63,776 bases of DNA. Source: Aplysia californica. Lineage: Eukaryota. The stretch is from positions 116,157-179,932 of the forward strand of contig NW_004797628.1 in NCBI RefSeq assembly GCF_000002075.1, given 5' to 3'. Both the position numbers and the translations under genes were made by a program. The notes beneath the pieces are model-generated. The model made no database searches. It was not told the DNA's origin and saw only the letters and a program-made list of their open reading frames with translations. The first letter of the stretch is position 1, and every line of letters begins with the position of its first letter. This document shows positions 26,829-63,428 of this stretch, one piece after another.

Positions 26829-26848
26829 TGGTGGCCCTTAAAAGGGCC
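26829..26848 (-). promoter_or_regulatory. Histone 3' stem-loop (SLBP-binding type), copy 1
   Basis: Minus strand GGCCCT-TTTA-AGGGCC-ACCA: 6-bp stem, 4-nt UUUN loop, ACCA tail. Confidence 0.8.
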
Positions 26849-27045
26849 TAGTAAAAAAATGTTAAGATTGTTTTTTCTTGCTGAAACAGGTTTCCATTTT
26901 CCTTCCAGGAGAAGCACGGGTCGATCTTGTGGTCGTGGGCGGAAAAGAAAGAGAATGACGTTCTGCAACAAAAAATCTATCAGGATAAGATACTATTGAA
27001 GACCACTCGACGCAGGCTTCAGCTTTCAGGATCGTTTCACCTGCT

Positions 27046-27816
27046 TCACACCGCTGCGCCCTCGGCGCTCTCCATGGATGTGAAGAGCGCCACTACGGCG
27101 GCCAGTACTTGTGCCTCAATATCTTCTTCTTGCGGCGGGTAGTCGGCCGATGATTCAGAAAGAGACGAGTCAACACAAGGAAACATCTCCTCGATTTCCT
27201 CCTCCGTAGGGGTTGGCATTAAATGGAAAATTCGAGGGTCCCATACATGGAGCATTCTGATTTTATCGTGCTCCTCTTCCTGTATGGGAGAAACAGTGAA
27301 TTGTTCTGACCTCAAAGATATTATTTCGAGGTCTTCTTCACTGTCAGCCCAGCTGGTGCCGCCATAGGACAAGTCTACGAAACCACGCGGTGTCAATGGA
27401 ATGACAGGCGTGTATGTTGTTTCGAAGACTACGGCGGCCGGTTCAGCTGTAGGCGAGGCCTCTTTGTAAGCATTGCCACTGGTCTCTTCCACTTGCAGAG
27501 ACCTACTTCCGGAGTGGCAAGCATTTTGATCCAAGGCCTCTGTCGAATTTTGACTTTTCTTTCTTTTTTTTTCTGTAGCGGCCATCTTGCCCCCAAAGCA
27601 AGACATCAAAAGTTGTTGGACTTTTTTCATCACCGGCATCTTGAGAGTCAGCAGGAAACCCGAGTGAAAGGCGTCGCAATCAAATGTTGTGAAAGTACGG
27701 ACCTCCGGGAGTACGAGAGCCATCCTGCCAGATGACGCAATGCGCTCACGGTGGTGCAGTGAACGCGAGAGTAAATAATATTGTATAACTATGGCGTGTT
27801 CACTTTCGTCATACAT
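27046..27816 (-). CDS. Uncharacterised acidic protein, array copy 1 (256 aa from first ATG outside the LTR; 179 aa if started at AAGATGGCC, 27585)
   Basis: Uninterrupted ORF, GC-richer than flanks, kept open in all four copies, with the histone stem-loop ~200 nt downstream; no recognised family. Confidence 0.6.
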   Translation of the reverse strand: MYDESEHAIVIQYYLLSRSLHHRERIASSGRMALVLPEVRTFTTFDCDAFHSGFLLTLKMPVMKKVQQLLMSCFGGKMAATEKKRKKSQNSTEALDQNACHSGSRSLQVEETSGNAYKEASPTAEPAAVVFETTYTPVIPLTPRGFVDLSYGGTSWADSEEDLEIISLRSEQFTVSPIQEEEHDKIRMLHVWDPRIFHLMPTPTEEEIEEMFPCVDSSLSESSADYPPQEEDIEAQVLAAVVALFTSMESAEGAAV

Positions 27817-27841
27817 GTACCGTGTTTTAAAAAAAGGAAGT

Positions 27842-30276
27842 TGTGGTGTATTAAGTCTTAAGTACGCAGAGATGAGAGAATTGGTTAAGAAGGCGAAGGC
27901 TGCGATCAGTTTTATCATTTTATGTTTATTCTTGTGCAGTCATACAATAGTAGTCAGTTAACATTAACGTTTTTAGCGGGTTTTCCGCAATATGCCAGAA
28001 TGGACTATTGGGGCCAAAATTAGATTACATCACACCCTCGCTCTGCTTCTGAAGAACTCTGTCGAAGAGACATGGTTTCAGGATATCGAGACGTGAACGA
28101 GTGTTTCTGCCCAGAAGAAGTTTTGCTGGTGACTCTCCTGTTGTGGCGCGTGCAGAATTTCGGTATGCCATCAGAAAACGTGAAAGTTTCATATGTGCAG
28201 TGAGCCTCCGTCCGATTTCGCAGATTTCATGTCATTTTTGAAGACTTGAACAAAACGTTCTTCGATGCCGTTTGTTAAAGGATGGTACGGGGCACTTGTG
28301 ATGTGCTTTATGCCGTTGTGTCGCAGGAAGCTTTTGAACTCTTCAGAGGTAAATTGCGGACCGTTGTCACTGACGAGTTGGGTCGGAAGTCCAAACCTTG
28401 CGAAAATTGTGGTCAGAACATCTATTGTAGCGCTGGAGGTAGTCGAAGTTGTGGGTATCTCTTTAGCCCATTTTGTGTGCGCATCAATGACTATCAGGAC
28501 CATACAATTCATAAATGGACCTGCATAGTCTGTGTGTATGCGTTGCCATGGTTTTTCTGGAAACGTCCATGGGTGCTGTGATGAACTTTGTGGGTCTGGT
28601 TGTGACTACATGCAGCCAGTACAGCCTTTGGTCATTTGCTCTATGTCCTTGTCCAGTCCTGGCCACCAGAAGTATCCACGAGTCATGTTCTTCATCTTGA
28701 CTATGCCTAGATGACCTTCATGCAGTTGTTGAAGGACTGATGTTTGAAGACTCTTGGGAACAATAGCCCGTGAATCCCACACTCGTGAACCCCACATTAA
28801 GCATCCTTGGTGGACGCCGAGTTCATCTTGTCTGTTCATATATATACGGCTTCATTTCACTTGGAACTTGTTGAGGCCAACCGTTTTGTGTGAAGTGGAT
28901 GACCTTTGACAAGATGGTGTCAGTTCTTGAGGCCTTGTTAATGTCCGATGCACTGATTGGCAGTCCTGTAAGGATTTCATTATACATGTAATACATCTCT
29001 TCCATTTCGCCGTCATCTGTGCTTCTCACAGATAATGAAAGTCTTGACTGAGTGTCTGCGTTGGCATTGCTTTTGGAGTTCCTGTATTCGATGGTGTAGT
29101 TGAATCCTGATAGGAATGCAGCGCAGCGTTGCTGGCGTGCTGCCGATGTAGCTGGAATGCCTGTGTTCGGCCCGAAAATGAACTTCAGCGGTTGGTGATC
29201 TGTGATGAGAGTAAAGTGATGACCACATATGTAGTTGTAGTTGTAGTTGTAGTTGTAGAATTTCTTGACACTCTACACAATGGCGAGAGCTTCCTTGTCT
29301 ATTTGGGAGTAATTCGAATCAGATTTCGAGAGGCATACGCTATTGGACGTTCTTCAATGTCCTCTGTAATGTGTGACAGCACAGCACCTATGCCGTAGGG
29401 TGAAGCACCACAGGCCAGTCTGCGACTACTGAGAGGAAGGTCTGGCTTGTAGCGGACCAGTACTTCCTCTGATGCAATCATGTCTTTTGCCTGCTGAAAT
29501 GCTCTGCTGCACTCGGTAGACCAGACGAAAGGCGTGTTGTTTTGCAACAGCTCGTGGAGTGGCTTTGCGATGAGGGCAATGTTCTTGAGGAACTTGTGGT
29601 AGTAGTTGAGTGGTCCCAGAAATGACCTGAGCTGGGTTTTGTTCTCAGGAATTGGGGCATTGACTATGGCATCAACACTTTCTTGGGTTTTGTTGAGTCC
29701 ATGTTTGTTGATTTTGAACCCGCAGAAGACGACTTCTTCTTGAAAGAATTTACATTTATCCTGGTCGGCCTTTAGACCGTTATCTTCCAGCCTTTTTATT
29801 ACTTCTGCAAGATTTTCCAGGTGCTTCTTATCGTTTTCGCCTGTGATGATCATGTCGTCCTGGTTGCACTGGACACCTTCTGCACCTTGGAGTACATGTA
29901 TTTGGTCAATTGTGCGTTGCCAGATAGCAGGCGATGACGTGATGCCAAAGACCAAACGGTTGAAAACATATAGTCCTTTGTGCGTGTTAATGGTGGTGAG
30001 AGGTCTGGATGACTCATCAAAGGGAGGCTGAAGATAGGCCTGGCAAAGATCGATCTTGGAGAATTTTTCTCCTGCTCCTGGTTGGGCGAAGAGATCTTCA
30101 ATCCTTGGGAGGGTGTATTGTTCTGCCTCAAGGACTGGGTTGATTGTGATTTTGAAATCACCGCAGATACGTACATCCCCAGAGCGTTTGAGAACTGGAA
30201 CTATTGGATTTGCCCACTCGGAATGGGTGGTCTTTGTCAGAATCCCAGCTGATTCCAGTTTTTCCAGTTCTTTCTC
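27842..30276 (-). mobile_element. Gypsy (Mag-clade) LTR retrotransposon relic, 3' part, copy A; 3' LTR 27842-28034
   Basis: TG...CA LTR, PPT agagcgaggg, integrase (VIDAHTKW..SDNGPQF..SAPYHPLTNGIEERFV), HHCC (LHEGH..GCTGC), RNase H and RT fragments; TSD GAAGT at 27837-27841. Confidence 0.92.
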
Positions 30277-30393
30277 NNNNNNNNNNNNNNNNNNNNNNNN
30301 NNNNNNNNNNNNNNNNNNNNNNNNNNNNNNNNNNNNNNNNNNNNNNNNNNNNNNNNNNNNNNNNNNNNNNNNNNNNAACAGATTTAATTTTTT

Positions 30394-30413
30394 TGGTGGC
30401 CCTTAAAAGGGCC
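30394..30413 (-). promoter_or_regulatory. Histone 3' stem-loop, copy 2
   Basis: Identical to copy 1. Confidence 0.8.
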
Positions 30414-30610
30414 TAGTAAAAAAATGTTAAGATTGTTTTTTCTTGCTGAAACAGGTTTCCATTTTCCTTCCAGGAGAAGCACGGGTCGATCTTGTGGTCG
30501 TGGGCGGAAAAGAAAGAGAATGACGTTCTGCAACAAAAAATCTATCAGGATAAGATACTATTGAAGACCACTCGACGCAGGCTTCAGCTTTCAGGATCGT
30601 TTCACCTGCT

Positions 30611-31381
30611 TCACACCGCTGCGCCCTCGGCGCTCTCCATGGATGTGAAGAGCGCCACTACGGCGGCCAGTACTTGTGCCTCAATATCTTCTTCTTGCGG
30701 CGGGTAGTCGGCCGATGATTCAGAAAGAGACGAGTCAACACAAGGAAACATCTCCTCGATTTCCTCCTCCGTAGGGGTTGGCATTAAATGGAAAATTCGA
30801 GGGTCCCATACATGGAGCATTCTGATTTTATCGTGCTCCTCTTCCTGTATGGGAGAAACAGTGAATTGTTCTGACCTCAAAGATATTATTTCGAGGTCTT
30901 CTTCACTGTCAGCCCAGCTGGTGCCGCCATAGGACAAGTCTACGAAACCACGCGGTGTCAATGGAATGACAGGCGTGTATGTTGTTTCGAAGACTACGGC
31001 GGCCGGTTCAGCTGTAGGCGAGGCCTCTTTGTAAGCATTGCCACTGGTCTCTTCCACTTGCAGAGACCTACTTCCGGAGTGGCAAGCATTTTGATCCAAG
31101 GCCTCTGTCGAATTTTGACTTTTCTTTCTTTTTTTTTCTGTAGCGGCCATCTTGCCCCCAAAGCAAGACATCAAAAGTTGTTGGACTTTTTTCATCACCG
31201 GCATCTTGAGAGTCAGCAGGAAACCCGAGTGAAAGGCGTCGCAATCAAATGTTGTGAAAGTACGGACCTCCGGGAGTACGAGAGCCATCCTGCCAGATGA
31301 CGCAATGCGCTCACGGTGGTGCAGTGAACGCGAGAGTAAATAATATTGTATAACTATGGCGTGTTCACTTTCGTCATACAT
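30611..31381 (-). CDS. Uncharacterised acidic protein, array copy 2
   Basis: Same ORF as 27046-27816. Confidence 0.6.
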   Translation of the reverse strand: MYDESEHAIVIQYYLLSRSLHHRERIASSGRMALVLPEVRTFTTFDCDAFHSGFLLTLKMPVMKKVQQLLMSCFGGKMAATEKKRKKSQNSTEALDQNACHSGSRSLQVEETSGNAYKEASPTAEPAAVVFETTYTPVIPLTPRGFVDLSYGGTSWADSEEDLEIISLRSEQFTVSPIQEEEHDKIRMLHVWDPRIFHLMPTPTEEEIEEMFPCVDSSLSESSADYPPQEEDIEAQVLAAVVALFTSMESAEGAAV

Positions 31382-31407
31382 GTACCGTGTTTAAAAAAAA
31401 AGGAAGT

Positions 31408-34400
31408 TGTGGTGTATTAAGTCTTAAGTACGCAGAGATGAGAGAATTGGTTAAGAAGGCGAAGGCTGCGATCAGTTTTATCATTTTATGTTTATTCTTG
31501 TGCAGTCATACAATAGTAGTCAGTTAACATTAACGTTTTTAGCGGGTTTTCCGCAATATGCCAGAATGGACTATTGGGGCCAAAATTAGATTACATCACA
31601 CCCTCGCTCTGCTTCTGAAGAACTCTGTCGAAGAGACATGGTTTCAGGATATCGAGACGTGAACGAGTGTTTCTGCCCAGAAGAAGTTTTGCTGGTGACT
31701 CTCCTGTTGTGGCGCGTGCAGAATTTCGGTATGCCATCAGAAAACGTGAAAGTTTCATATGTGCAGTGAGCCTCCGTCCGATTTCGCAGATTTCAATGCA
31801 TTTTTGAAGACTTGAACAAAACGTTCTTCGATGCCGTTTGTTAAAGGATGGTACGGGGCACTTGTGATGTGCTTTATGCCGTTGTGTCGCAGGAAGCTTT
31901 TGAACTCTTCAGAGGTAAATTGCGGACCGTTGTCACTGACGAGTTGGGTCGGAAGTCCAAACCTTGCGAAACTTGTGGTCAGAACATCTATTGTAGCGCT
32001 GGAGGTAGTCGAAGTTGTGGGTATCTCTTTAGCCCATTTTGTGTGCGCATCAATGACTATCAGGACCATACAATTCATAAATGGACCTGCATAGTCTGTG
32101 TGTATGCGTTGCCATGGTTTTTCTGGAAACGTCCATGGGTGCTGTGATGAACTTTGTGGGTCTGGTTGTGACTACATGCAGCCAGTACAGCCTTTGGTCA
32201 TTTGCTCTATGTCCTTGTCCAGTCCTGGCCACCAGAAGTATCCACGAGTCATGTTCTTCATCTTGACTATGCCTAGATGACCTTCATGCAGTTGTTGAAG
32301 GACTGATGTCTGAAGACTCTTGGGAACAATAGCCCGTGAATCCCACACTCGTGAACCCCACATTAAGCATCCTTGGTGGACGCCGAGTTCATCTTGTCTG
32401 TTCATATATATACGGCTTCATTTCACTTGGAACTTGTTGAGGCCAACCGTTTTGTGTGAAGTGGATGACCTTTGACAAGATGGTGTCAGTTCTTGAGGCC
32501 TTGTTAATGTCCGATGCACTGATTGGCAGTCCTGTAAGGATTTCATTATACATGTAATACATCTCTTCCATTTCGCCGTCATCTGTGCTTCTCACAGATA
32601 ATGAAAGTCTTGACAGAGTGTCTGCGTTGGCATTGCTTTTGGAGTTCCTGTATTCGATGGTGTAGTTGAATCCTGATAGGAATGCAGCGCAGCGTTGCTG
32701 GCGTGCTGCCGATGTAGCTGGAATGCCTGTGTTCGGCCCGAAAATGAACTTCAGCGGTTGGTGATCTGTGATGAGAGTAAAGTGATGACCACATATGTAG
32801 TTGTAGTTGTAGTTGTAGTTGTAGAATTTCTTGACACTCTACACAATGGCGAGAGCTTCCTTGTCTATTTGGGAGTAATTCGAATCAGATTTCGAGAGGC
32901 ATACGCTATTGGACGTTCTTCAATGTCCTCTGTAATGTGTGACAGCACAGCACCTATGCCGTAGGGTGAAGCATCACAGGCCAGTCTGCGACTACTGAGA
33001 GGAAGGTCTGGCTTGTAGCGGACCAGTACTTCCTCTGATGCAATCATGTCTTTTGCCTGCTGAAATGCTCTGCTGCACTCGGTAGACCAGACGAAAGGCG
33101 TGTTGTTTTGCAACAGCTCGTGGAGTGGCTTTGCGATGAGGGCAATGTTCTTGAGGAACTTGTGGTAGTAGTTGAGTGGTCCCAGAAATGACCTGAGCTG
33201 GGTTTTGTTCTCAGGAATTGGGGCATTGACTATGGCATCAACACTTTCTTGGGTTTTGTTGAGTCCATGTTTGTTGATTTTGAACCCGCAGAAGACGACT
33301 TCTTCTTGAAAGAATTTACATTTATCCTGGTCGGCCTTTAGACCGTTATCTTCCAGCCTTTTTATTACTTCTGCAAGATTTTCCAGGTGCTTCTTATCGT
33401 TTTCGCCTGTGATGATCATGTCGTCCTGGTTGCACTGGACACCTTCTGCACCTTGGAGTACATGTATTTGGTCAATTGTGCGTTGCCAGATAGCAGGCGA
33501 TGACGTGATGCCAAAGACCAAACGGTTGAAAACATATAGTCCTTTGTGCGTGTTAATGGTGGTGAGAGGTCTGGATGACTCATCAAAGGGAGGCTGAAGA
33601 TAGGCCTGGCAAAGACGCGAGAATTTTTCTCCTGCTCCTGGTTGGGCGAAGAGATCTTCAATCCTTGGGAGGGTGTATTGTTCTGCCTCAAGGACTGGGT
33701 TGATTGTGATTTTGAAATCACCGCAGATACGTACATCCCCAGAGCGTTTGAGAACTGGAACTATTGGATTTGCCCACTCGGAATGGGTGGTCTTTGTCAG
33801 AATCCCAGCTGATTCCAGTTTTTCCAGTTCTTTCTCGACCTTCTTTGTGAGAGCGTAGGGCACGGGTCTCGCCTTCAGGAACTTTGGTGGGGCCTGGTGT
33901 TGGATAGTGAGTCTTGCTTGGTGGCTTTTTGCTGTTCCCATCCCTTCAGTGAAGACCTCTTTGTGCGTGGTCAGCAACTCTTGCTATTCGGTTTGCGAAT
34001 CTTGAGAAGTAGAGGCAGGAATTAATGCTTGCTGAATCTGTTTAAGAGCATGCCACTAAAGCTGGAACTTTTGCAGCCAGTTTCGTCCAAATAATGGATT
34101 GCTGCCTTTTTGAAGAATGCACAAGGGCAGCTTCTTCTCGACATTATCCATTTTTACCAGCACCTCAGCAACTCCCAGCGGCCGCACTTGCTCCCCTGTG
34201 TAAGTTTAAAGTACAGTGTTGCAGGTATGAAGTGTCGAACAATTTGCAGTAGTCCTGCATTGACATGATGCTCAGACTGGAGCCAGTGTCCAATTCCATG
34301 GGGATTTGCTTTGCTTTGACGAAGGGGTGGATCCAAATTTTACTGGGCGAGCCATTGTACTGGTGAATGCTGAAGAAGTCCACTGTTTCAGTGTCTTCGT

Positions 34401-36344
34401 CTAGCTGATGTACCTTTCTCGGCTGATGTCGCTTCTGTTGACTATTGTGAGGCCGAAATGCAGGTTTTGGGTTTTGGGTTTGGTTTGCCTTTGGGTTTGG
34501 ATAACCTGCAAACTGACTGAATGTGTCCACTTTTGTGACACATGTTACACTTTGCCTCGCGAAAGTAGCAGTCAGATCTTGCAGGATTTGTTTTCCAACA
34601 AGGTTGACATGGGGGATACTTCCGTGTTGGTTTGTAGTTTTGAACTGCATGCACATGTGTCGATGTGCTGGATCCTGCTGAGGACGTGGGCAGCTCGTTT
34701 GCATCCCGACTGGCCATTTCAAGAGCAACCGCTTTGTCATATGCTGTCTTGAAAGTAAGGTTTTCTTCTAGGAGAAGGCGTTTTTGAATTGTTGTGTCCC
34801 GTAGACCACAGACAAGCCTGTGTCACAATGACTGATCCAGATGATCGCCGAAGTTACAATGTTCGCTGAGCCTTTTTATTTCTACTGTGTAGATGACAAC
34901 GTCATAAAAAGGAGTCAAATCCTAGGAGTTTTGACAAGAAACTGAGAAAGCTTCCACAATTCAGGCAGAATTACAATATTATCATGTAGAAACGATGGCT
35001 ACTAGATTTAGAATACAGATCTAGATTCTAGCACTGGCGTATCATTCAAAAAGCAAGGGAGCTATTCAGAACGCGGCTTTTCAAATAGCGCGGGAGCTAT
35101 TCTGAATGCGGCGTTGCAAATATAAGCGCCTCGATTCCTAAAAAAAAAATTTCTAGCTTCGAGGAATTTACCCATACCCACGAATCTTTGCATGGCACTT
35201 CTGCAGGCCTTTCAAAAATCTGAACCCAGTAAGAGAAAACAAGTTTTTCTCATTGGGTCTTAGATCTGTCTATATAAAAAACGCCCTTTGGATGCATACA
35301 CAGGATCATTAAAATAAATACAGTGTCTTATAACGAGTCCTGAAACAACGAGAAGTCTGCTATAAAGACACTATTCTAAAACTCTATTTTTTCCCTTCTT
35401 TATCTTTGTAAATAAAATACTGCTATTGCGCAATCAGACAGTCACGCGAGTCGGTTTTAGCGGAATAATCCTGCTGCTGTGCACAGCACACAGACCAATT
35501 AAACATAACACCTCCCCAGCTGAGAAAGTTGTTGGTGATCCAGCGAAACAAAGAACGGGACACCCCACGCGAACCAACAATGAAGGCCGTAGGCCTAGCA
35601 CAGAATTCTACAATCCCAAACTGTCTCTGGTAGGCAACATGACAAGATGAAACCTCAGACGGAACCCCCCCCCNNNNNNNNNNNNNNNNNNNNNNNNNNN
35701 NNNNNNNNNNNNNNNNNNNNNNNNNNNNNNNNNNNNNNNNNNNNNNNNNNNNNNNNNNNNNNNNNNNNNNNNNGCTGAGCCTTTTTATTTCTACTGTGTA
35801 GGCCTGAATTGACTAATTTTCTCTCTGGTTGCGGTTATGAAACCTGAATCTTTCTGCAATTTCTAGGGGTTGCGGGGAAAGATGTGCATTCAAGATCATT
35901 CTCAATTGAGCATATGTCTTTGTAGAAGGCATATCAGGCGCCGTGAGGGATCGTAGTAACTGATAGGTCTTGGGTCCGATACAAGCGAGCAAAGTCGCAG
36001 CCCTCTTTGCTTCTGCATCATCATAAAATTGCAATGAAGTACATGTATTGCTCTAACCGTTCAGAGTAGTTCTGAAAAGTCTCCGTTGCGCTGTCGAACG
36101 CGTCAATCTTCATCGAAGGCATACTTAGATAAAATTAGCCTACCTCGTCGCCAGTTGTGGTGTATTAAGTCTTAAGTTCACTGAGATGAGAGAATGAGTT
36201 AAGAAGGCGAAGGCTGTGATCAGTTTTGTGTTTATTCTTGTGCAGTCGTACAATAGTAGTCAGGTAACATTTGCGTTTTTAGCGGCTTTTCGGACCGCAA
36301 CATGTCAGAGTGGACTATTGGGGCCAAAATTAGATTACATCACA
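31408..36344 (-). mobile_element. Gypsy (Mag-clade) LTR retrotransposon relic, copy B (3' LTR 31408-31600, 5' LTR 36156-36344; broken at 34891-35773)
   Basis: PBS TGGCGACGAGG (36153-36143); gag (KIDAFDSATETFQNYSERLEQY, AERFRFHNRNQ, CNMCHKSGHIQSVC); protease LDTGSS; RT 32865-33977; integrase; TSD GAAGT at 31403-07 and 36345-49; several stops and frameshifts. Confidence 0.92.
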
Positions 36345-36416
36345 GAAGTGGCTATTTGCAACGCCGCTTTGCGATTAGCGCCAGTGCTAAATAAAACCCC
36401 GTGTGCCTAGGCTATA

Positions 36417-37325
36417 GGTAGAATGGGTAGTGTCTACGTTCTCTAACGTTAGAGGACGTACACCAGCTGCCTACGTTCTCTAATGCTCAGTGCTTCCAAG
36501 CGCGTGGCATCGAATCCCGGTCCCGGAAAATTGGGGGGGGGGGGGAGGTGGGGGGGGGGTTGTTGTTTTTTCCCCTCTCCTTCTCCTTACTGCCCCCAGA
36601 CCCCCAAACAGGACGAATAATAATTGGCAGGAGGAACAATTGGCAGGGGTCTGGGGGCCGCAGGAGGGTCCTGGATAAAGAAAATGTGTAATTGAAGAAC
36701 TAAGATTTGGCCTCTCTGATTCTAAAATAAATTAAAAAAATTAGACTCAAAGACCAAGGAAAGCCACTGTTGAAAATGTACTTTAACCTGACATAAATTG
36801 GTAAAAGGAAAAGAAGGCCTACACTTAGTAGATAAAATCTCCTCTTGGGGACAAAACCAGAATTTGCATGCTTCATCACTACATAAGAAATTAAAAGGTA
36901 ACAAATTATAACTATGGGGAAAATTGTTGGTCGGTGAGGAGGAAGAGAAGAAGAAGAAACAAAAACAAACAAAAAACCCCCCGTCAGGACCGGGCTTCGA
37001 ACCCACACTCATACACTTCAAGCGCAGACACGCTGACCATTCGGCTATCAGATCATCCAACGATTATAAGGCATAATATATTATTATACAGCACTGTTTA
37101 AGGAAAGGCAACAACATAGATCAAGATGTTGACATCTAGTTTTCTCTACTTCTACAACAAAGAAAGTGAGAAGGTCGGGAAAATGTGGATGATGGGAGGG
37201 GGGATCGGCAGATGAGGTCTGGGAGGAAACTATTTAAAAAATGGCGGAAAATTGGAAGCACTGAACGTTAGAGAACGTAGACAGCTTGTATACATTCTCT
37301 AACGTTAGAGAACGTAGACACTTCC
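36417..37325. mobile_element. MULE/Mutator-like non-autonomous element (second copy 42443-43302)
   Basis: 9-bp direct repeat TAGGCTATA on both sides (36408-16, 37326-34); TIR ggtagtgtctacgttctctaacgttagag / ctctaacgttagagaacgtagacacttcc. Confidence 0.7.
36983..37058 (-). other. tRNA-like Pol III cassette inside the MULE-like element
   Basis: A box TAGCCGAATGG, B box GGTTCGAAGCC, downstream T run; acceptor stem does not pair well. Confidence 0.5.
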
Positions 37326-37344
37326 TAGGCTATATGAAGTTTAT

Positions 37345-37850
37345 CTACCTTTCGTTTTTGGAAGTTCTGATGGCTGAAAGTACAGCGCCTCTGCGTTTGA
37401 AACAAAACCATTATTTTATGAGCCTGGGTTTGATCCTGGTTCTGGAAGTTTTTTTTTTTGGTCCTCTTCTCGACTGACCAACAAATTTTCCCTTAGATCT
37501 AATTATAACTTGTTGCTTTGTAGTTTTTTTAATGTAGTGATGGAGCGTATACATTCTGGTTTTGTCCCCAAGAGGAGCTCTGTCTTAGTAGGCCTATAGC
37601 CTATAGATCTACTTTTCCTTTAACCAATTAATTAGGCCTGGTTAAAGTTCAATACATGTAACAGCTTTCCTTGGTCTGTGAGTCTAATTATGTTTTTTTA
37701 AATTTTAGGCTCAGGAGAAGAAAAAAAAAACAAACCCTTCCGGGACCGGGATTCGATGCCGCGCTTAGAAGCACTGAACATTAATCTAGACTAAGTCCTA
37801 GCGAACGTAGACAGCTTGTATACAATGTACATGTATACGTTCTCTAGGCA
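37345..37850. mobile_element. Older partial, inverted relative of the MULE-like element
   Basis: 37552-37688 and 37738-37846 are diverged reverse complements of 36740-36863 and 36440-36530; 37360-37450 mirrors the tRNA-like cassette. Confidence 0.65.
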
Positions 37851-38809
37851 GGCCTAACTTAAAGATAATATTTTTAGGTAGATCTATTGTATAACAACAC
37901 TGCAGACAGGAAATACTGCCTATACCGAGTTGCACCGTCTTGTTATTAAATTGTTATCCAAGCGTCTTTCGACTTACTTGCCCAAACTCCAAACTCAAAT
38001 GATTATTGAGAGACGAACAAGACTACGTCTAGAATCTAGTTTACTTTTGTGCAAACAATGTCAGAAACAATTGTTAGATCTAATTGAGATCTAGATTCTA
38101 GGTCTACCCAATATTGATCGGAATAGGACAACGTCATAAAAAGGAGTCAAACCCTAGGAGGTTTATCAAGAAACTGAGAAAGCTTCCACAATTCAGGCAG
38201 AACTACAATATTATCATGTAGAAACGACCAGCTGCACAGTAAAGATTTTTCAACCTCATGCTGTATTTGGTTGTTCTTTCTGGTTGGTACACTTCTTCGT
38301 TTTCTGATTAACTGTTGTTGTTTTTTTTTCTCTCTTTTTCTTCTGATTTAAAATAAAATATTTGGTAAGTGTTTTACACGCTTGCAATTGCATAAGGTCA
38401 TATGAGAGCACAGGACTCGTTAAACAATTTCATTTGGTAGAAAATTTTGAATTTTGCCGGGTTGGCGGCCAAAGCCTATTCTTATCGATTTTGAACTGCC
38501 AAGGGATCTTTAATGTACTCAACTTTCACTCGAGACCTTCGAGATTTTTCGCCCTTATCCGAGAAGGTCAGGAGTTGGATCTTACCATCCATAAGATCAG
38601 GGGTGTGGCTAAAAGACAGCAGTAAGAAGGAATCAAGGAATAGCAGTAGAAATTTAAGGCTGCAGAAAGAGTCAGGAGCCAAGAGGAAGGGGCAAACGAA
38701 CGAGGTGAGGGGGTGGGGCAGAAAGAGCGAGACGAAATCAGACGACATAACATTGTTAGAGAGCAGGAAAGGAGGTGAAAGGAGAGCATTTTAGAGACAA
38801 ATATTTTCC

Positions 38810-38883
38810 GTCGCCATCCAGATTCGAACCGGGGACCTATGGAATGAGAGGAAAACACCCTAACTTCTGGACTACGAGAGCCC
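38810..38883 (-). pseudogene. Degenerate tRNA-like sequence (Glu-CTC-like); second copy ~44839-44912
   Basis: tcgtagtccagaagttagg...tCTCa...ccccggttcgaatctgg; B box intact, stems imperfect. Confidence 0.45.
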
Positions 38884-39189
38884 TCCGATGATGATCTGTT
38901 TGCGCTGTATGTTTGGCTACTTCTGGTGTTGGTTTTATTCATTGTCACGTGACCTTCAAATGATCATTAGGGTGGGTTTTTACTGTTTTGTTCTTCGCTT
39001 TACTACACTTCCTCATAGGTTACCCTGTCTATCCATCTGATCCCGAGCAACCTTTTTAGACATTTAATTTTGTTCCAAAAAGTTGGGGAAAATATCCTGT
39101 GCCCTCTAATAGATGTAGTTACCTTTATAACCAATAGATTATGTGTACCACGTGTATCAAACCTTTATCTTAAACAGATTTAATTTTTT

Positions 39190-39209
39190 TGGTGGCCCTT
39201 AAAAGGGCC
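39190..39209 (-). promoter_or_regulatory. Histone 3' stem-loop, copy 3
   Basis: Identical motif; purine-rich AAGATAAAGG ~22 nt downstream of the stem. Confidence 0.8.
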
Positions 39210-39406
39210 TAGTAAAAAAATGTTAAGATTGTTTTTTCTTGCTGAAACAGGTTTCCATTTTCCTTCCAGGAGAAGCACGGGTCGATCTTGTGGTCGTGGG
39301 CGGAAAAGAAAGAGAATGACGTTCTGCAACAAAAAATCTATCAGGATAAGATACTATTGAAGACCACTCGACGCAGGCTTCAGCTTTCAGGATCGTTTCA
39401 CCTGCT

Positions 39407-40177
39407 TCACACCGCTGCGCCCTCGGCGCTCTCCATGGATGTGAAGAGCGCCACTACGGCGGCCAGTACTTGTGCCTCAATATCTTCTTCTTGCGGCGGG
39501 TAGTCGGCCGATGATTCAGAAAGAGACGAGTCAACACAAGGAAACATCTCCTCGATTTCCTCCTCCGTAGGGGTTGGCATTAAATGGAAAATTCGAGGGT
39601 CCCATACATGGAGCATTCTGATTTTATCGTGCTCCTCTTCCTGTATGGGAGAAACAGTGAATTGTTCTGACCTCAAAGATATTATTTCGAGGTCTTCTTC
39701 ACTGTCAGCCCAGCTGGTGCCGCCATAGGACAAGTCTACGAAACCACGCGGTGTCAATGGAATGACAGGCGTGTATGTTGTTTCGAAGACTACGGCGGCC
39801 GGTTCAGCTGTAGGCGAGGCCTCTTTGTAAGCATTGCCACTGGTCTCTTCCACTTGCAGAGACCTACTTCCGGAGTGGCAAGCATTTTGATCCAAGGCCT
39901 CTGTCGAATTTTGACTTTTCTTTCTTTTTTTTTCTGTAGCGGCCATCTTGCCCCCAAAGCAAGACATCAAAAGTTGTTGGACCTTTTTCAGCACCGGCAT
40001 CTTGAGAGTCAGCAGGGAACCCGAGTGAAAGGCGTCGCAATCAAATGTTGTGAAAGTACGGACCTCCGGGAGTACGAGAGCCATCCTGCCAGATGACGCA
40101 ATGCGCTCACGGTGGTGCAGTGAACGCGAGAGTAAATAATATTGTATAACTATGGCGTGTTCACTTTCGTCATACAT
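39407..40177 (-). CDS. Uncharacterised acidic protein, array copy 3
   Basis: Same ORF; two amino-acid differences from copies 1 and 2, both upstream of MSCFGG/MAATEK. Confidence 0.6.
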   Translation of the reverse strand: MYDESEHAIVIQYYLLSRSLHHRERIASSGRMALVLPEVRTFTTFDCDAFHSGSLLTLKMPVLKKVQQLLMSCFGGKMAATEKKRKKSQNSTEALDQNACHSGSRSLQVEETSGNAYKEASPTAEPAAVVFETTYTPVIPLTPRGFVDLSYGGTSWADSEEDLEIISLRSEQFTVSPIQEEEHDKIRMLHVWDPRIFHLMPTPTEEEIEEMFPCVDSSLSESSADYPPQEEDIEAQVLAAVVALFTSMESAEGAAV

Positions 40178-40289
40178 GTACCGTGTTTANNNNNNNNNNN
40201 NNNNNNNNNNNNNNNNNNNNNNNNNNNNNNNNNNNNNNNNNNNNNNNNNNNNNNNNNNNNNNNNNNNNNNNNNNNNNNNNNNNNNNNNN

Positions 40290-42370
40290 GCCTTTTTATT
40301 ACTTCTGCAAGATTTTCCAGGTGCTTCTTATCGTTTTCGCCTGTGATGATCATGTCGTCCTGGTTGCACTGGACACCTTCTGCACCTTGGAGTACATGTA
40401 TTTGGTCAATTGTGCGTTGCCAGATAGCAGGCGATGACGTGATGCCAAAGACCAAACGGTTGAAAACATATAGTCCTTTGTGCGTGTTAATGGTGGTGAG
40501 AGGTCTGGATGACTCATCAAAGGGAGGCTGAAGATAGGCCTGGCAAAGACGCGAGAATTTTTCTCCTGCTCCTGGTTGGGCGAAGAGATCTTCCATCCTT
40601 GGGAGGGTGTATTGTTCTGCCTCAAGGACTGGGTTGATTGTGATTTTGAAATCACCGCAGATACGTACATCCCCAGAGCGTTTGAGAACTGGAACTATTG
40701 GATTTGCCCACTCGGAATGGGTGGTCTTTGTCAGAATCCCAGCTGATTCCAGTTTTTCCAGTTCTTTCTCGACCTTCTTTGTGAGAGCGTAGGGCACGGG
40801 TCTCGCCTTCAGGAACTTTGGTGGGGCCTGGTGTTGGATAGTGAGTCTTGCTTGGTGGCTTTTTGCTGTTCCCATCCCTTCAGTGAAGACCTCTTTGTGC
40901 GTGGTCAGCAACTCTTGCTATTCGGTTTGCGAATCTTGAGAAGTAAAGGCAGGAATTAATGCTTGCTGAATCTGTTTAAGAGCATGCCACTAAAGCTGGA
41001 ACTTTTGCAGCCAGTTTCGTCCAAATAATGGATTGCTGCCTTTTTGAAGAATGCACAAGGGCAGCTTCTTCTCGACATTATCCATTTTTACCAGCACCTC
41101 AGCAACTCCCAGCGGCCGCACTTGCTCCCCTGTGTAAGTTTAAAGTACAGTGTTGCAGGTATGAAGTGTCGAACAATTTGCAGAAGTCCTGCATGGACAT
41201 GATGCTCAGACTGGAGCCAGTGTCCAATTCCATGGGGATTTGCTTTGCTTTGACGAAGGGGTGGATCCAAATTTTACTGGGCGAGCCATTGTACTGGTGA
41301 ATGCTGAAGAAGTCCACTGTTTCAGTGTCTTCGTCTAGCTGATGTACCTTTCTCGGCTGATGTCGCTTCTGTTGACTATTGTGAGGTCGAAATGCAGGTT
41401 TTGGGTTTTGGGTTTGGTTTGCCTTTGGGTTTGGATAACCTGCAAACTGACTGAATGTGTCCACTTTTGTGACACATGTTACACTTTGCCTCGCGAAAGT
41501 AGCAGTCAGATCTTGCAGGATTTGTTTTCCAACAAGGTTGACATGGGGGATACTTCCGTGTTGGTTTGTAGTTTTGAACTGCATGCACATGTGTCGATGT
41601 GCTGGATCCTGCTGAGGACGTGGGTAGCTCGTTTGCATCCCGACTGGCCATTTCAAGAGCAACCGCTTTGTCATATGCTGTCTTGAAAGTAAGGTTTTCT
41701 TCTAGGAGAAGGCGTTTTTGAATTGTTGTGTCCCGTAGACCACAGACAAGCCTGTGTCACAATGACTGATCCAGATGATCGCCGAAGTTACAATGTTCGC
41801 TGAGCCTTTTTATTTCTACTGTGTAGGCCTGAATTGACAAATTTTCTCTCTGGTTGCGGTTATGAAACCTGAATCTTTCTGCAATTTCTAGGGGTTGCGG
41901 GGAAAGATGTGCATTCAAGATCATTCTCAATTGAGCATATGTCTTTGTAGAAGGCATATCAGGCGGCGTGAGGGATCGTAGTAACTGATAGGTCTTGGGT
42001 CCGATACAAGCGAGCAAAGTCGCAGCCCTCTTTGCTTCTGCAACATCATAAAACTGCAATGAAGTACATGTATTGGTCTAACCGTTCAGAGTAGTTCTGA
42101 AAAGTCTCCGTTGCGCTGTCGAACGCGTCAATCTTCATCGAAGGCATACTTAGATAAAATGAGCCTACCTCGTCGCCAGTTGTGGTGTATTAAGTCTTAA
42201 GTTCACTGAGATGAGAGAATGAGTTAAGAAGGCGAAGGCTGTGATCAGTTTTGTGTTTATTCTGGTGCAGTCGTACAATAGTAGTCAGGTAACATTTGCG
42301 TTTTTAGCGGCTTTTCGGACCGCACCATGTCAGAGTGGACTATTGGGGCCAAAAATTAGATTACATCACA
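40290..42370 (-). mobile_element. Gypsy (Mag-clade) relic, 5' part, copy C (5' LTR 42181-42370)
   Basis: RT N-terminal half, protease, contiguous gag region, PBS, LTR, TSD GAAGT at 42371-75. Confidence 0.92.
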
Positions 42371-45218
42371 GAAGTGGCTATTTGCAACGCCGCGTTGCGA
42401 TTAGCGCCAGTGCTAAATAAAACCCCGTGTGCCTAGGCTATAGGTAGAATGGGTAGTGTCTACGTTCTCTAACGTTAGAGGACGTGCACAAGCTGCCTAC
42501 GTTCTCTAATGCTCAGTGCTTCCAAGCGCGTGGCATCGAATCCCGATCCCGGAAACTTGGGGGGGGGGGGGGACCCCCAACCAGGACGAATAATAATTGG
42601 CAGGAGGAACAATTGGCAGGAGTCTGGGGGCCGCAGGAGGGTCCTGGATAAAGAAAATGTGTAATTGAAGAACTAAGATTTGGACTCTCTGATTCTAAAA
42701 TAAATTTAAAAAATTAGACTCAAAGACCAAGGAAAGCCACTGTTGAAAATGTACTTTAACCAGGCATAAATTGGTAAATGGAAAAGAAGGCCTACACTTA
42801 GTAGATAAAATCTCCTCTTGGGGACAAAACCAGAATTTGCATGCTTCATCACTGCATAAGAAATTAAAAGGTAACAAATTATAACTATGGGGAAAACTGT
42901 TGGTCAGTGGGGAGGAGGAGAAGAAGAAGAAGAAAACAAACAACCCCCCCCCTCCCCCGTCAGGACCGGGCTTCGAACCCACACTCATACACTTCAAGCG
43001 CAGACACGCTGACCACTCGGCTATCAGATCATCCAACGATTATAAGGCATAATATATTATTATACAGCACTGTTTAAGGAAAGGCAACAACATAGATCAA
43101 GATGTTGACATCTAGTTTTCTCTACTTCTACAACAAAGAAAGTGAGAAGGTCGGAAAAATGTGGATGATGGGAGGGGAGGATCGGCAGATGAGGTCTGGG
43201 GGGAAACTATTTAAAAAATGGCGGAAAATTGGAAGCACTGAACGTTAGAGAATGTAGACAGCTTGTATACATTCTTTAACGTTAGAGAACGTAGACACTT
43301 CCTAGGCTATATGAAGTTTATCTACCTTTCGTTTTTGGAAGTTCTGATGGCTGAAAGTACAGCGCCTCTGCGCTTGAAACAAAACCATTATTTTATGAGC
43401 CTGGGTTCGATCCTGGTTCTGGAAGTCTTTTTTTTTTGTCCTCTTCTCGACTGACCAACAAATTTTCCCGTAGATCTAATTATAACTTGTTGCTTTGTAG
43501 TTTTTTTATGTAGTGATGGAGCGTATACATTCTGGTTTTGTCCACAAGAGGAGCTCTGTCTTAGTAGGCCTATAGCCTATAGATCTACTTTTCCTTTAAC
43601 CAATTAATTAGGCCTGGTTAAAGTTCAATACATGTAACAGCTTTCCTTGGTCTGTGAGTCTAATTATGTTTTTTTAAATTTTAGGCTCAGGAGAAGAAAA
43701 AAAAAAACCCTTCCGGGACCGGGATTCGATGCCGCGCTTAGAAGCACTGAACATTAATCTAGACTTAGTCCTAGCGAACGTAGACAGCTTGTATACAATG
43801 TACATGTATACGTTCTCTAGGCCTAACTTAAAGATAATATTTTTAGGTAGATCTATTGTATAACAACACTGCGGACAGGAAATACTGCCGCCTATACCGA
43901 GTTGCACCGTCTTGTTATTAAATTGTTATCCAAGCGTCTTTCGACTTACTTGCCCAAACTCCAAACTCAAATGATTATGATTATGAGAGACGAACAAGAC
44001 TACGTCTAGAATCTAGTCTACTTTTGTGCAAACAATGTCAGAAACAATTGTTAGATCTAATGGAGATCTAGATTCTAGGTCTACCCAATATTGATCGGAA
44101 TAGGACAACGTCATAAAAAGAAGTCAAACCCTAGGAGGTTTATCAAGAAACTGAGAAAGCTTCCACAATTCAGGCAGAACTACAATATTATCATGTAGAA
44201 ACGACCAGCTGCACAGTAAAAATTTTTCAACCTCATGCTGTTCCCTTCGTTTTCTTTTGAACTCGGATTGTTTTGTGTGGAGTTTTCAACCCATTTGGTT
44301 GTTCTTTCTGGTTGGTACACTTCTTCGTTTTCTGATTAACTGTTGTTGTTTTTTCTTTCTCTCTTTTTCTTCTGATTTAAAATAAAATATTTGGTAAGTG
44401 TTTTACACGCTTGCAATTGCATAAGGTCATATGAGAGCACAGGACACGTTAAACAATTTCATTTGGTAGAAAATTTTGAATTTTGCCGGGTTGGCGGCCG
44501 AAGCCTATTCTTATCGATTTTGAACTGCCAAGGGATCTTTAATGTACTCAACTTTCACTCGAGACCTCCGAGATTTTTCGCCCTTATCCGAGAAGGTCAG
44601 GAGTTGGATCTTACCATCCATAAGATCAGGGGTGTGGCTAAAAGACAGCAGTAAGAAGGAATCAAGGAATAGCAGTAGAAATTTAAGGCTGCAGAAAGAG
44701 TCAGGAGCCAAGAGGAAGGGGCAAACGAACGAGGTGAGGGGGTGGGGCAGAAAGAGCGAGACGAAATCAGACGACATAACATTGTTAGAGAGCAGGAAAG
44801 GAGGTGAAAGGAGAGCATTTTAGAGACAAATATTTTCCGTCGCCATCCAGATTCGAACCGGGGACCTATGGAATGAGAGGAAAACACCCTAACTTCTGGA
44901 CTACGAGAGCCCTCCGATGATGATCTGTTTGCACTGTATGTTTGGCTACTTCTGGTGTTGGTTTTATTCATTGTCACGTGACCTTCAAATGATCATTAGG
45001 GTGGGTTTTTACTGTTTTGTTCTTCGCTTTACTACACTTCCTCATAGGTTACCCTGTCTATCCATCTGATCCCGAGCAACCTTTTTAGACATTTAATTTT
45101 GTTCCAAAAAGTTGGGGAAAATATCCTGTGCCCTCTAATAGATGTAGTTACCTTTATAACCAATAGATTATGTGTACCACGTGTATCAAACCTTTATCTT
45201 ACACAGATTTAATTTTTT

Positions 45219-45238
45219 TGGTGGCCCTTAAAAGGGCC
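45219..45238 (-). promoter_or_regulatory. Histone 3' stem-loop, copy 4
   Basis: Identical motif; AAGATAAAGG at 45200-45191. Confidence 0.8.
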
Positions 45239-45435
45239 TAGTAAAAAAATGTTAAGATTGTTTTTTCTTGCTGAAACAGGTTTCCATTTTCCTTCCAGGA
45301 GAAGCACGGGTCGATCTTGTGGTCGTGGGCGGAAAAGAAAGAGAATGACGTTCTGCAACAAAAAATCTATCAGGATAAGATACTATTGAAGACCACTCGA
45401 CGCAGGCTTCAGCTTTCAGGATCGTTTCACCTGCT

Positions 45436-46206
45436 TCACACCGCTGCGCCCTCGGCGCTCTCCATGGATGTGAAGAGCGCCACTACGGCGGCCAGTACTT
45501 GTGCCTCAATATCTTCTTCTTGCGGCGGGTAGTCGGCCGATGATTCAGAAAGAGACGAGTCAACACAAGGAAACATCTCCTCGATTTCCTCCTCCGTAGG
45601 GGTTGGCATTAAATGGAAAATTCGAGGGTCCCATACATGGAGCATTCTGATTTTATCGTGCTCCTCTTCCTGTATGGGAGAAACAGTGAATTGTTCTGAC
45701 CTCAAAGATATTATTTCGAGGTCTTCTTCACTGTCAGCCCAGCTGGTGCCGCCATAGGACAAGTCTACGAAACCACGCGGTGTCAATGGAATGACAGGCG
45801 TGTATGTTGTTTCGAAGACTACGGCGGCCGGTTCAGCTGTAGGCGAGGCCTCTTTGTAAGCATTGCCACTGGTCTCTTCCACTTGCAGAGACCTACTTCC
45901 GGAGTGGCAAGCATTTTGATCCAAGGCCTCTGTCGAATTTTGACTTTTCTTTCTTTTTTTTTCTGTAGCGGCCATCTTGCCCCCAAAGCAAGACATCAAA
46001 AGTTGTTGGACCTTTTTCAGCACCGGCATCTTGAGAGTCAGCAGGGAACCCGAGTGAAAGGCGTCGCAATCAAATGTTGTGAAAGTACGGACCTCCGGGA
46101 GTACGAGAGCCATCCTGCCAGATGACGCAATGCGCTCACGGTGGTGCAGTGAACGCGAGAGTAAATAATATTGTATAACTATGGCGTGTTCACTTTCGTC
46201 ATACAT
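45436..46206 (-). CDS. Uncharacterised acidic protein, array copy 4
   Basis: Same as copy 3; followed by GAAGT and the start of an LTR (46234-46255) before the gap. Confidence 0.6.
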   Translation of the reverse strand: MYDESEHAIVIQYYLLSRSLHHRERIASSGRMALVLPEVRTFTTFDCDAFHSGSLLTLKMPVLKKVQQLLMSCFGGKMAATEKKRKKSQNSTEALDQNACHSGSRSLQVEETSGNAYKEASPTAEPAAVVFETTYTPVIPLTPRGFVDLSYGGTSWADSEEDLEIISLRSEQFTVSPIQEEEHDKIRMLHVWDPRIFHLMPTPTEEEIEEMFPCVDSSLSESSADYPPQEEDIEAQVLAAVVALFTSMESAEGAAV

Positions 46207-61100: not shown

Positions 61101-63428
61101 GGCCAGAGAATCAGTTCCATTCCTTGGTTCAGCAAGTTTCGATGAAGTTAAATTAGGTGAGGTGACAGCATCATCAGGATCAAAGAAAAAAAGATCGTCT
61201 GGCTTAGGTAACAAAAGTTCTAAACAACTTTCTGCTTCCTTTGCACAGTCATCTATTTCTGACTTGGTCTCTGAGGAAGAAAGAAATATAATATACATGC
61301 TCTTTTCTGTTACGCTATAGAAATTCCAAAATACAAATGACATTAACCTACTATGAGATTATTATTCTAGTTCAATTTTTTACATACATATATCAACCAC
61401 TCAGTACAAGACTCCATCATTTGTCACTTTTCAAAATGGTGTAAGGAAGACTCTTGCACTAAGCAGTCTAAATGTATTTTGGGTCCAATATGTCATTTGC
61501 ATTTAATATAGTTCAGATCCACAGTGTTACATATCTCAACCACACTTCATGCTCTTAATGTTTACAACTACAAAATCACAGTTTCCCACACATGAAAATA
61601 AATCACAATGCAACCACAAATTGGATAAGGTGAGCTAAGAAAAAAACAGCAAATAAAATTGCTTTATGTGATCACCCGCATACAATTGTCCAAAATTTGC
61701 CCTTTCAGTGTGACAAACCACAAGATTGACAACAGAGACTATTAATTTAATATGGACTAACATAAACAATAACAACTTTTAGAATTCCAGTAATCATGTC
61801 ACATCTTAGGGGATTCAAATGATAAGAAGGGAGAAGATGGACAGTACTTTCCTTTGATTTTGATAGCAGCTGTCTGCTGAACTTTAAATTCCCCTGCTTC
61901 TAAACATAGATAAACATAAGCCACATAAATATCATTGATTCATTATTAAAACTAGATTCTTAACCAGTAATAGCCCCCCCCCCCCTCCCAAAACAAAGAA
62001 AATCACAGGATGACCAACCTGAAATTTCCTGTTCAACTTTACGCAGCTTATCTGCCATGATTTTTTTCTTTCTTCTCTCCTCCTCCTCAATCCTTTGCTG
62101 TTCAGCAAGATTTTGGGCTTGAATGTTAGTGAAATCAATCTGAGGAGAGACAAATAGCAACAGCAACAAAATGTAAGTACACATTTTCAGCACTGTGATA
62201 CTAGGGAGGAGGATGTGCAAGTGATCAAGAGGGTCAAACATTTGAGGAGAGACAGACAAACATGGCCTGTGCTCCACTGGGAGTTAAAAAGGGCACGAGA
62301 GAGAGAACAACATAGGAGGGAAGTAAAGAAAGCCTCAGAGACCAGAAAGAGGAATTTAATAAGTTTTAATTAAAAGCAAACAAATTTAGAAATTTTGCTG
62401 TTGCTACTACTGTGGAATTAGATGGGCCAACCAAGATAAAAGGGCAACTGCAAGCACTTATTGAGCAGTTTTCTCAACCAAATTTTTTAAAAGTAGCGTT
62501 ATAATCAAGGCAAATTGATGAAATATTTCAAACCCATTACCTCCAAAAATCCACTCACATTTTTGCAGTTTTTTAGGTAGTCATATCCAATGACCAGCTT
62601 CCTATATCCTTGACCAAACTTATCATACCATCTCTGTACAGCATGCAGAGTGTCAGTCTTCAGTTTCTTGGCAACAGACTTCGGTGGGGGCAGTGGCTGC
62701 TTCACCTCTGTCTCTACAATTTTGACATTCATGGAAATAGATATAATTAAACACACACACATACATAATAAAANNNNNNNNNNNNNNNNNNNNNNNNNNN
62801 NNNNNNNNNNNNNNNNNNNNNNNNNNNNNNNNNNNNNNNNNNNNNNNNNNNNNNNNNNNNNNNNNNNNNNNNNNNNNNNNNNNNNNNNNNNNNNNNNNNN
62901 NNNNNNNNNNNNNNNNNNNNNNNNNNNGCCACTATCAAATGTAAAGTAAGCAGGGAATTCTGTATTTCTTTCAAACTATGCGAGCAAAAGATTACCAAAG
63001 CAAACGAGCAAATGAATACTTCCAAGATTGTTCATTCTAAAAACTGAATTTAAAGGAATGAATGAAATAAAAAAAAAAGTAAAATTTGTGTTAAAAAAAA
63101 GAGCAGCACTGTTCATATACATGCACCTTTTTAAGCAACATTTCAATATCAATACAGAACTTCCAATAAAAAAAAAAACCCCAACAACAAGCAAAAATGC
63201 CATAACAGTTTAAAATTATTATAGATTCTTAGCAGTAACATTTTGGTATTACCAGCTGTTAAAGCAAGAAAATCTTGAAGGTGAGTGACTAGAATTTCTC
63301 GAAATGCATGAGATCTGTTGAACAATTCGTCTGCCACTTGAAATGCTGACAGTCGTACTTCAGAATGCTTTTTCTTCAGATGTCTCATGATGAGTAAAAA
63401 AGCAAAGCGAACATAGTCATCAGACTTT
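49166..63428 (-). CDS. UVSSA: UV-stimulated scaffold protein A (5'-partial; 13 coding exons in window)
   Basis: Phase-compatible GT-AG exons 63428-63253, 62713-62559, 62139-62019, 61270-60675, 59726-59585, 58848-58771, 58292-58112, 56453-56298, 54261-54201, 53100-52978, 51591-51465, 50555-50327, 49262-49166. Motifs: [124 protein letters not shown]. Confidence 0.95.
53975..54048 (-). mobile_element. tRNA(Asp)-derived SINE head, degenerate (related copy ~51232-51310, +)
   Basis: gtggtgtagcgattgg..ctGTCacacgcaggagac....gattcctgactggggag. Confidence 0.4.
54527..55566. mobile_element. piggyBac-like non-autonomous element in a UVSSA intron
   Basis: TTAA|CTCATTCGCTACG ... CGTAGCGAATGAG|TTAA: 13-bp perfect TIR and TTAA TSD. 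Confidence 0.85.
60195..60520 (-). mobile_element. tRNA-headed CORE-like SINE with L2-type tail
   Basis: tcctagtggttagg A box, gggttcgg B box, gtgtccttgggaaaggcact core, aatgggtaccca, tail aagcgcatagag...gctataaaaatgctatctattataatt. Confidence 0.7.

Follow-up and report, generated by a model that had tools for sequence, protein, structure and literature searches.

Which kind of gene ends in a histone mRNA stem-loop if it does not encode a histone? This question is raised by a stretch of 63,776 nucleotides of the Aplysia californica genome (contig NW_004797628.1, positions 116,157 to 179,932 of the forward strand; herein called the window, with positions counted from its first letter). In it, each of four tandem copies of an intronless open reading frame (ORF) for an acidic protein is followed by such a stem-loop. 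According to the literature (PMC4604434), no cellular mRNAs except those for histones are known to be non-polyadenylated. A first-pass annotation of the window had suggested that a non-histone gene family has adopted the histone 3′-end element, which is bound by SLBP and processed with the U7 small nuclear ribonucleoprotein (snRNP). At the DNA level this suggestion stands: in 20 loci, the hairpin is conserved together with a promoter box, a purine-rich downstream element, and a coding sequence under selection, and the 3′ cassette is akin to that of genes for H1-like basic proteins. From this we infer that SLBP and U7 are used in vivo. Judging from the sequence, these are probably non-histone genes on a captured H1-type cassette, whose mRNAs would be processed by SLBP and U7 and lack a poly(A) tail.

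Stem-loops of the window and of the genome

On the minus strand, exactly four hairpins are found (0.02 expected by chance), at 45223-45238 (copy 4, followed by ACCA), 39194-39209 (copy 3), 30398-30413 (copy 2), and 26833-26848 (copy 1); they are the four that the first-pass annotation had pointed out. Its distance of about 200 nt between ORF and hairpin amounts to 197 nt from the stop codon in each copy, measured on gap-free sequence. An Aplysia H4 gene has exactly the same 16-nt hairpin, and a search with the Rfam model Histone3 (RF00032) yields 31.5 bits (E = 1.4e-6), slightly below the gathering score of 34. As had also been described, AATAAA is absent between stop and hairpin, each window copy has an ATTAAA that begins 10 nt past the stem, and tblastn detects no histone-like coding sequence in the window. 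Across 15 distinct loci of the gene family to which the ORF belongs, all 90 stem cells are paired, and 15/15 hairpins are fully paired. Five of the six base pairs are invariant; the third is U-G in eight loci, C-G in four, and U-A in three. The surrounding 3′ untranslated region (UTR) diverges while the stem is kept.

Genome-wide, hairpins were collected with a relaxed pattern alongside a reversed control, and the DNA upstream of all hits was inspected. The census comprises 60 hairpins versus 3 in the control, and 51 of the 60 lie behind histone, H1-like/basic, or acidic-family ORFs: 20 behind the acidic non-histone family, 8 behind basic ORFs, and 23 behind canonical histone genes (13 H1, 9 H3, and 1 H4). 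The other 9 are without such a gene and chance-like. The acidic family holds one-third of the histone-type hairpins in the assembly, a fraction that is not the true gene ratio because the assembly probably under-represents core histone clusters. Separately, a G-U-closed hairpin variant, GGTCCTTTTTAGGACTA, recurs at ~15 loci (e.g., G000 C46:1492845 and C64:871771) and is perhaps a repeat family. At L072, L049, and L077 (G000 C885, C2, and C2100), divergent copies of H3 stand in tandem; their central region is altered, their stem-loops are intact, and they form a variant or pseudogene family.

Promoter box and downstream element

Upstream of the ORF lies an H4-box-like promoter box, CGGAGGTCCG, that is common to Aplysia H1 and H1-like genes. 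In the window, it is found on the minus strand at 46088-46097 (copy 4), 40059-40068 (copy 3), 31263-31272 (copy 2), and 27698-27707 (copy 1). It stands 60-100 nt before the ATG in 18 of 20 acidic loci and in all 8 basic loci. Canonical H1 loci carry the box as CGGACGTCCG (11 of 13), followed by a TATA box that is absent from the acidic genes; H3 and H4 loci are without the box. The exact extended box occurs 43 times genome-wide (control, 2), and 15 of the 43 have a same-strand hairpin 0.6-0.9 kb downstream, versus 0.0006 expected. The remaining 28 exact boxes are not followed by a perfect hairpin; they could mark additional members, or genes of this regulon whose mRNAs are polyadenylated. Such box-only loci include, in G000, C1:5113241, 5165144, and 5172138; C14, C24, C42, C90, C111, C277, C331, C337, C376, C378, C437, C444, C495, C566, C568, C589, C635, C651, C656, C678:135058, C736, and C1314:70755.

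The purine-rich sequence that had been noticed 3′ of the hairpin in copies 3 and 4 (39154-39171 and 45183-45200, minus strand) is present and conserved across the family as a putative histone downstream element (HDE). It is located at +20 to +40 past the stem and exists in two types, type A ending in TGATACA (to which copy 4 belongs) and type B ending in TGCA. Either type can be found on acidic as well as basic genes; canonical histone genes have neither. The odd 5′ flank of the hairpin and the longer spacing, entered as caveats on first pass, are real differences, but they are hallmarks of this cassette class rather than signs of decay. With these elements, RNA polymerase II would initiate ~40-50 nt past the box, SLBP would bind the hairpin, and the U7 snRNP would pair with the downstream element; CPSF73 would then cleave ~5 nt past the stem and leave a non-polyadenylated mRNA.

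The hairpin could serve otherwise if the mRNAs are polyadenylated, namely as an internal SLBP site for the control of translation or stability and not as a 3′ end. Such a role agrees with the ATTAAA past the stem in the window copies, with AATAAA within 300 nt at several loci, and with the atypical 5′ flank; moreover, polyadenylated forms of some replication-dependent histone mRNAs are reported from differentiated tissue (PMC5100578). Yet poly(A) signals hold no constant position among the loci, and in 9 of 15 the next 300 nt are free of them; the downstream element is kept at a fixed distance, as pairing with U7 would require. One poly(A) library (tissue unlabelled) contains zero reads on the window ORF. 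Polyadenylation with an internal hairpin is, hence, improbable, and the alternative polyadenylated form that had been allowed for on first pass is unsupported, as the ATTAAA is not conserved among paralogs.

Kinship with H1-like basic genes

The eight basic ORFs behind histone-type hairpins (L065, L066, L061, L055, L027, L030, L048, and L012, corresponding to G000 C625 twice, C317, C131, C622, C847, C1, and C156) are divergent H1-like or arginine-rich. Linker-histone similarity is detected in six of them (E = 4e-7 to 0.045), of which two exceed the Pfam cut-off; the remaining two of the eight are arginine-rich and show none. From their sequences, they are likely to be unannotated sperm nuclear basic proteins (SNBPs), a class thought to derive from H1 (PMC5011920). 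One of them is the RefSeq entry "pre-mRNA-splicing factor 38B-like" (XP_035828684.1), a name that is probably a misnomer. The two without a detectable H1 domain represent further non-histone cargo.

Acidic and basic genes resemble each other in their 3′ cassettes, which are 75-85% alike across 60-100 nt. When the 87-nt cassettes are placed in a tree, from a short alignment and with a midpoint root, acidic and basic genes interleave, canonical H1 genes stand apart, and at least three changes between acidic and basic labels are forced by well-supported branches. An H1-like ortholog (59% identity) in the assembly of another species keeps the box, the U-run, the hairpin, and the downstream element. 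The cassette would have been acquired from an H1-like sperm-type gene by duplication at the DNA level, since promoter and downstream element are retained; H1 ancestry of the acidic coding sequence itself was not detected by hhalign or six-frame searches. Since neither type A nor type B is confined to the acidic or to the basic genes, the cassette appears to have moved between coding sequences more than once.

Where would such genes be expressed? Control in S phase or in the oocyte and early embryo had been proposed on first pass. The male germline is a better guess because the cassette groups with H1-like sperm-protein-type genes and not with canonical S-phase histones. By this association, we lean toward expression in the germline, probably in spermatogenesis, alongside the H1-like sperm-type proteins. 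A variant, counted within the reading of SLBP/U7-processed genes, would retain that processing and assign the genes to S phase or to oocyte and embryo. It is at odds with the position of the 3′ cassette, which clusters with arginine-rich and divergent H1-like genes instead of canonical histones, and with the missing TATA box that follows the H1 box; rapid divergence and turnover are in keeping with reproductive genes. It draws on the box shared with canonical H1 genes, on the stem-loop coupling histone mRNAs to replication (PMC4604434), and on the Aplysia ovotestis, one organ in which both germlines are housed (PMC4786481). Taken together, this variant is possible but the less likely of the two.

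The acidic gene family and its protein

In the window, the acidic ORF spans 45436-46029 (copy 4), 39407-40000 (copy 3), 30611-31204 (copy 2), and 27046-27639 (copy 1), all on the minus strand. The first-pass annotation had called the protein acidic, and its isoelectric point (pI) is indeed 4.45 for copy 4, with 4.05-4.45 across the family. The upstream ATG of the 256- or 290-aa ORF is a less probable start than the ATG of MPV (46029 in copy 4), because the paralogs begin at the latter and the promoter box falls inside the longer ORF. The true translation start is, hence, most likely the MPV ATG, which predicts a protein of ~197 aa (197 aa in copy 4); the 256- and 290-aa readings are run-ons into the 5′ flank and the long terminal repeat (LTR) of a neighboring retroelement.

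The family comprises 20 loci, 16 with intact ORFs and 4 broken or gapped; the intact ORFs are continuous and intronless at the DNA level. A typical gene consists of the box 60-100 nt 5′ of the ATG, an ORF of 160-213 aa, a 3′ UTR of 104-213 nt, the stem-loop, and the purine-rich element. Among the window gene and the three paralogs nearest to it (48-78% identity), the ratio of nonsynonymous to synonymous substitution rates (dN/dS) is 0.35-0.59, and all internal alignment gaps among these four are multiples of three. Other family pairs give 0.17-0.71, some with saturated dS. Judged by these patterns, the acidic ORFs are under purifying selection and are genuine genes.

The loci might instead be decayed duplicates of H1 or sperm-protein genes, with hairpin and box as relics and the acidic ORF accidental or in a shifted frame. 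Four of the 20 loci are broken, the genes are absent from protein databases, and dN/dS is only moderately below 1, as such decay would have it. However, 16 ORFs are intact across sub-families at 30-50% identity with triplet-only indels, N- and C-terminal motifs are shared, and no stem is broken in 15 loci. A comparison of H1, H3, H4, and H1-like proteins with the acidic loci in all six frames, by tblastn and hidden Markov models (HMMs), gave no similarity (best E = 0.23), which leaves a shifted frame of an H1-like gene unsupported. Decay is, thus, very unlikely.

All members share one layout: a basic amphipathic N-terminal helix (hydrophobic moment 0.55-1.13) with one to four cysteines comes first, a body that is acidic and rich in serine follows, and the C-terminus carries the motif acidic-I/V-L-x-x-hydrophobic-x-x-L-F. 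Because BLASTP connects the sub-families only weakly (E = 1e-5 to 0.04), the case for their common origin depends in part on this architecture. An AlphaFold model (pLDDT 55) shows N- and C-terminal helices with disorder or low confidence between them. The acidic ORFs contain no Pfam domain, a match to MAGE (E = 0.14-0.19) being not significant. Winged-helix homology is given a probability of ≤0.2% by hhalign; a relation of the C-terminal helix to H1 helix 1 is likewise unsupported.

Homologs of the acidic protein were found neither in a word-index search with single sequences and profiles, nor by an exhaustive HMM search of 1.84 billion representative proteins, nor in JGI metagenomes. A search of the ESM Atlas was uninformative (best 0.75). 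All these blanks are weakened by low complexity and length limits. By exact look-up, the acidic proteins are not in protein collections, though the canonical Aplysia H1 is (XP_005107059.1). Tentatively, the protein could be modeled as a disordered scaffold that is tethered to a membrane via the basic amphipathic N-terminal helix with acylatable cysteines and that binds a partner via its C-terminal helix, although we hold this to be rather doubtful; the alternative is a chaperone for basic sperm proteins.

RNA evidence and processing machinery

An SLBP domain is encoded in the genome (G000:C8). No labelled RNA run contains the window stretch. Contigs of run X19 are limited to 46038-45279 and those of run X13 to ~46015-45600, at low depth and in the gene body only. 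One contig of run X18 stops at 45215, 8 nt past the stem, though contigs cannot show transcript ends. This picture fits a poly(A)-minus transcript from an unsampled tissue, without demonstrating one.

Several points weigh against SLBP/U7-processed, germline-expressed genes. X18 also covers sequence beyond the hairpin and upstream of the box; no transcript end is observed, contig depth is 2-9, and the runs may be DNA. Searching the genome for a U7 gene returned chance-level matches only (best E = 0.5). Compared with Aplysia H1 genes, the distance from stem to downstream element is ~6-10 nt greater. The hairpin also has a U-rich 5′ flank instead of a C/A-rich one. Covariation of the hairpin is not significant versus shuffles (183/500) because five stem pairs are invariant; the stem, hence, behaves as conserved and not as significantly covarying. 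The above searches, within their low-complexity and length limits, returned no acidic homolog from beyond this genome. Both tissue and protein function are assigned by association. The window copies, finally, carry a Gypsy LTR ~135 nt 5′ of the box; they may be silenced or LTR-driven.

Architecture of the tandem array

The array is best explained as a recent tandem expansion of one member of the Aplysia orphan gene family. Its unit, in the order spacer, Gypsy, gene, consists of one family gene and a decayed Gypsy element that were duplicated together; the picture of the repeat unit drawn on first pass was incomplete in that this LTR element had been overlooked. Upstream of copy 2, the element is framed on the minus strand by a 5′ LTR (36156-36344; primer-binding site at 36144-36153) and a 3′ LTR (31408-31600) of 92% identity to it. 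Between them lies an internal region with gag, reverse transcriptase (RT), RNase H, and integrase (31601-36155) that contains many stops and frameshifts as well as a gap at 35674-35773. A 5-bp target-site duplication, ACTTC, flanks the element at 31403-31407 and at 36345-36349, where the spacer (36345-39153) terminates. Upstream of copy 3, a 5′ LTR (42181-42370) and decayed gag, protease, and RT (40290-42180, interrupted by a gap at 40190-40289) remain, and upstream of copy 1, RT, RNase H, and integrase (28035-30276) and the 3′ LTR (27842-28034) are left, all on the minus strand. A further spacer of the unit, with dispersed repeats, lies at 42371-45182. The insertion of the Gypsy element predates the duplication of the unit.

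The Gypsy neighbor raises the possibility that the unit belongs to a mobile element or endogenous virus, with the acidic ORF as an extra Gypsy ORF and the hairpin serving the element. In the window, the ORF does follow the pol gene on the same strand. However, it sits ~200 nt outside the 3′ LTR and the target duplication that bounds the element, which ends ~135 nt upstream of the promoter box. A DNA search with the unit matched paralogous loci in the gene body only, and the dispersed members still have promoter and downstream element, both of which a retrocopy would lack. This explanation is largely refuted and hardly tenable.

Gaps of 100 N at 30277 (between RT region and hairpin flank) and at 40190 (between RT region and 5′ flank of the ORF) bring together parts of the unit that are not neighbors. 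The two sides are, therefore, discontinuous, and the distances between hairpins (3565, 8796, and 6029 nt) do not reflect a real period; no gap lies within any ORF-hairpin unit. Gene copies 1 and 2, as well as 3 and 4, are identical over 1015 nt, and three sites differ between the pairs. The spacer behind copy 3 matches the one behind copy 4 at 96.6% (3.4% difference). At least two gene copies are real, and the four may include allelic or mis-assembled duplicates. The gag sequence preceding the gap at 35674 is found again at ~34892, past ~780 nt of other sequence. This non-Gypsy insert of ~780 nt in gag (34893-35673) includes a 101-nt copy of spacer DNA and is possibly a mis-join. Within the spacer, 44370-44890 is a high-copy, abundantly transcribed repeat with a tRNA-like head. 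Outside the array, both on the minus strand, the window contains an intronless, somewhat divergent actin ORF (711-1916; Pfam Actin, E = 6e-143) and, upstream of the array on the same strand, a multi-exon UVSSA gene (~50263-63559; PF20867, E = 1.5e-16) whose last exon was not located.

Comparison with known systems and significance

Like replication-dependent histone genes (RF00032), the acidic genes are intronless, multi-copy, and partly tandem, and they combine a 6-bp stem, 4-nt loop, and ACCA with a purine-rich downstream element and no conserved poly(A) signal. Unlike them, they encode neither a core nor a linker histone (pI 4.05-4.45), have a U-rich 5′ flank, a more distant downstream element, and no TATA box after the box, and their 3′ UTR measures 104-213 nt as opposed to 30-64 nt in Aplysia H1, H3, and H4. 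They resemble a replication-dependent histone gene at both ends but are not one, the histone product being absent. With candidate SNBPs of the protamine-like (PL) type, the family has box, U-run, hairpin, and type A or B element in common, as seen in the eight Aplysia basic ORFs, whose sperm role is itself inferred from sequence. In contrast to PL-type proteins, the acidic proteins are of opposite charge (pI ~4.1-4.5) and have no detectable winged-helix homology. The box appears similar to the H4 box of H1.0/H5-type promoters, itself similar to H4 site II, in standing just upstream of the start; GGTCC, which we take to be the core of the H4 box, matches the Aplysia box in its core letters. Vertebrate H1.0 mRNAs are polyadenylated, whereas the Aplysia box accompanies a stem-loop. 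An H4 box just upstream of the start has been described for promoters of H1.0-type linker histones (PMC6027317). The window element conforms to Ty3/Gypsy in its LTRs, primer-binding site, gag-RT-RNase H-integrase order, and 5-bp target duplication. Unlike an accessory or env-like Gypsy ORF, the acidic ORF does not lie between LTRs, and the Gypsy element is a decayed passenger upstream of the gene.

In the searchable literature, beyond which most subscription papers lie, no report of a non-histone family with histone-type ends was found. The Aplysia family suggests a known histone pathway with an orphan non-histone cargo. On balance, we favor an Aplysia germline regulon in which a non-histone family would be made from stem-loop-ended, non-polyadenylated mRNAs that are processed by SLBP and U7 via a cassette class shared with sperm-type H1 derivatives and moved repeatedly between coding sequences. 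If true, the histone-only rule would be broken by a multi-gene family that encodes no histone, is under selection, and has the complete cassette, and the histone pathway would be shown to be a portable module. Owing to their U-rich flank, longer HDE spacing, and long UTR, the acidic genes would be natural substrates for defining what SLBP and U7 require. Annotation that is based on poly(A) RNA would largely miss the genes of such a germline regulon. The finding, thus, predicts a hidden gene class in other animals, overlooked because annotation relies on poly(A) RNA, in line with protein collections that contain the canonical H1 of Aplysia and none of its acidic proteins.

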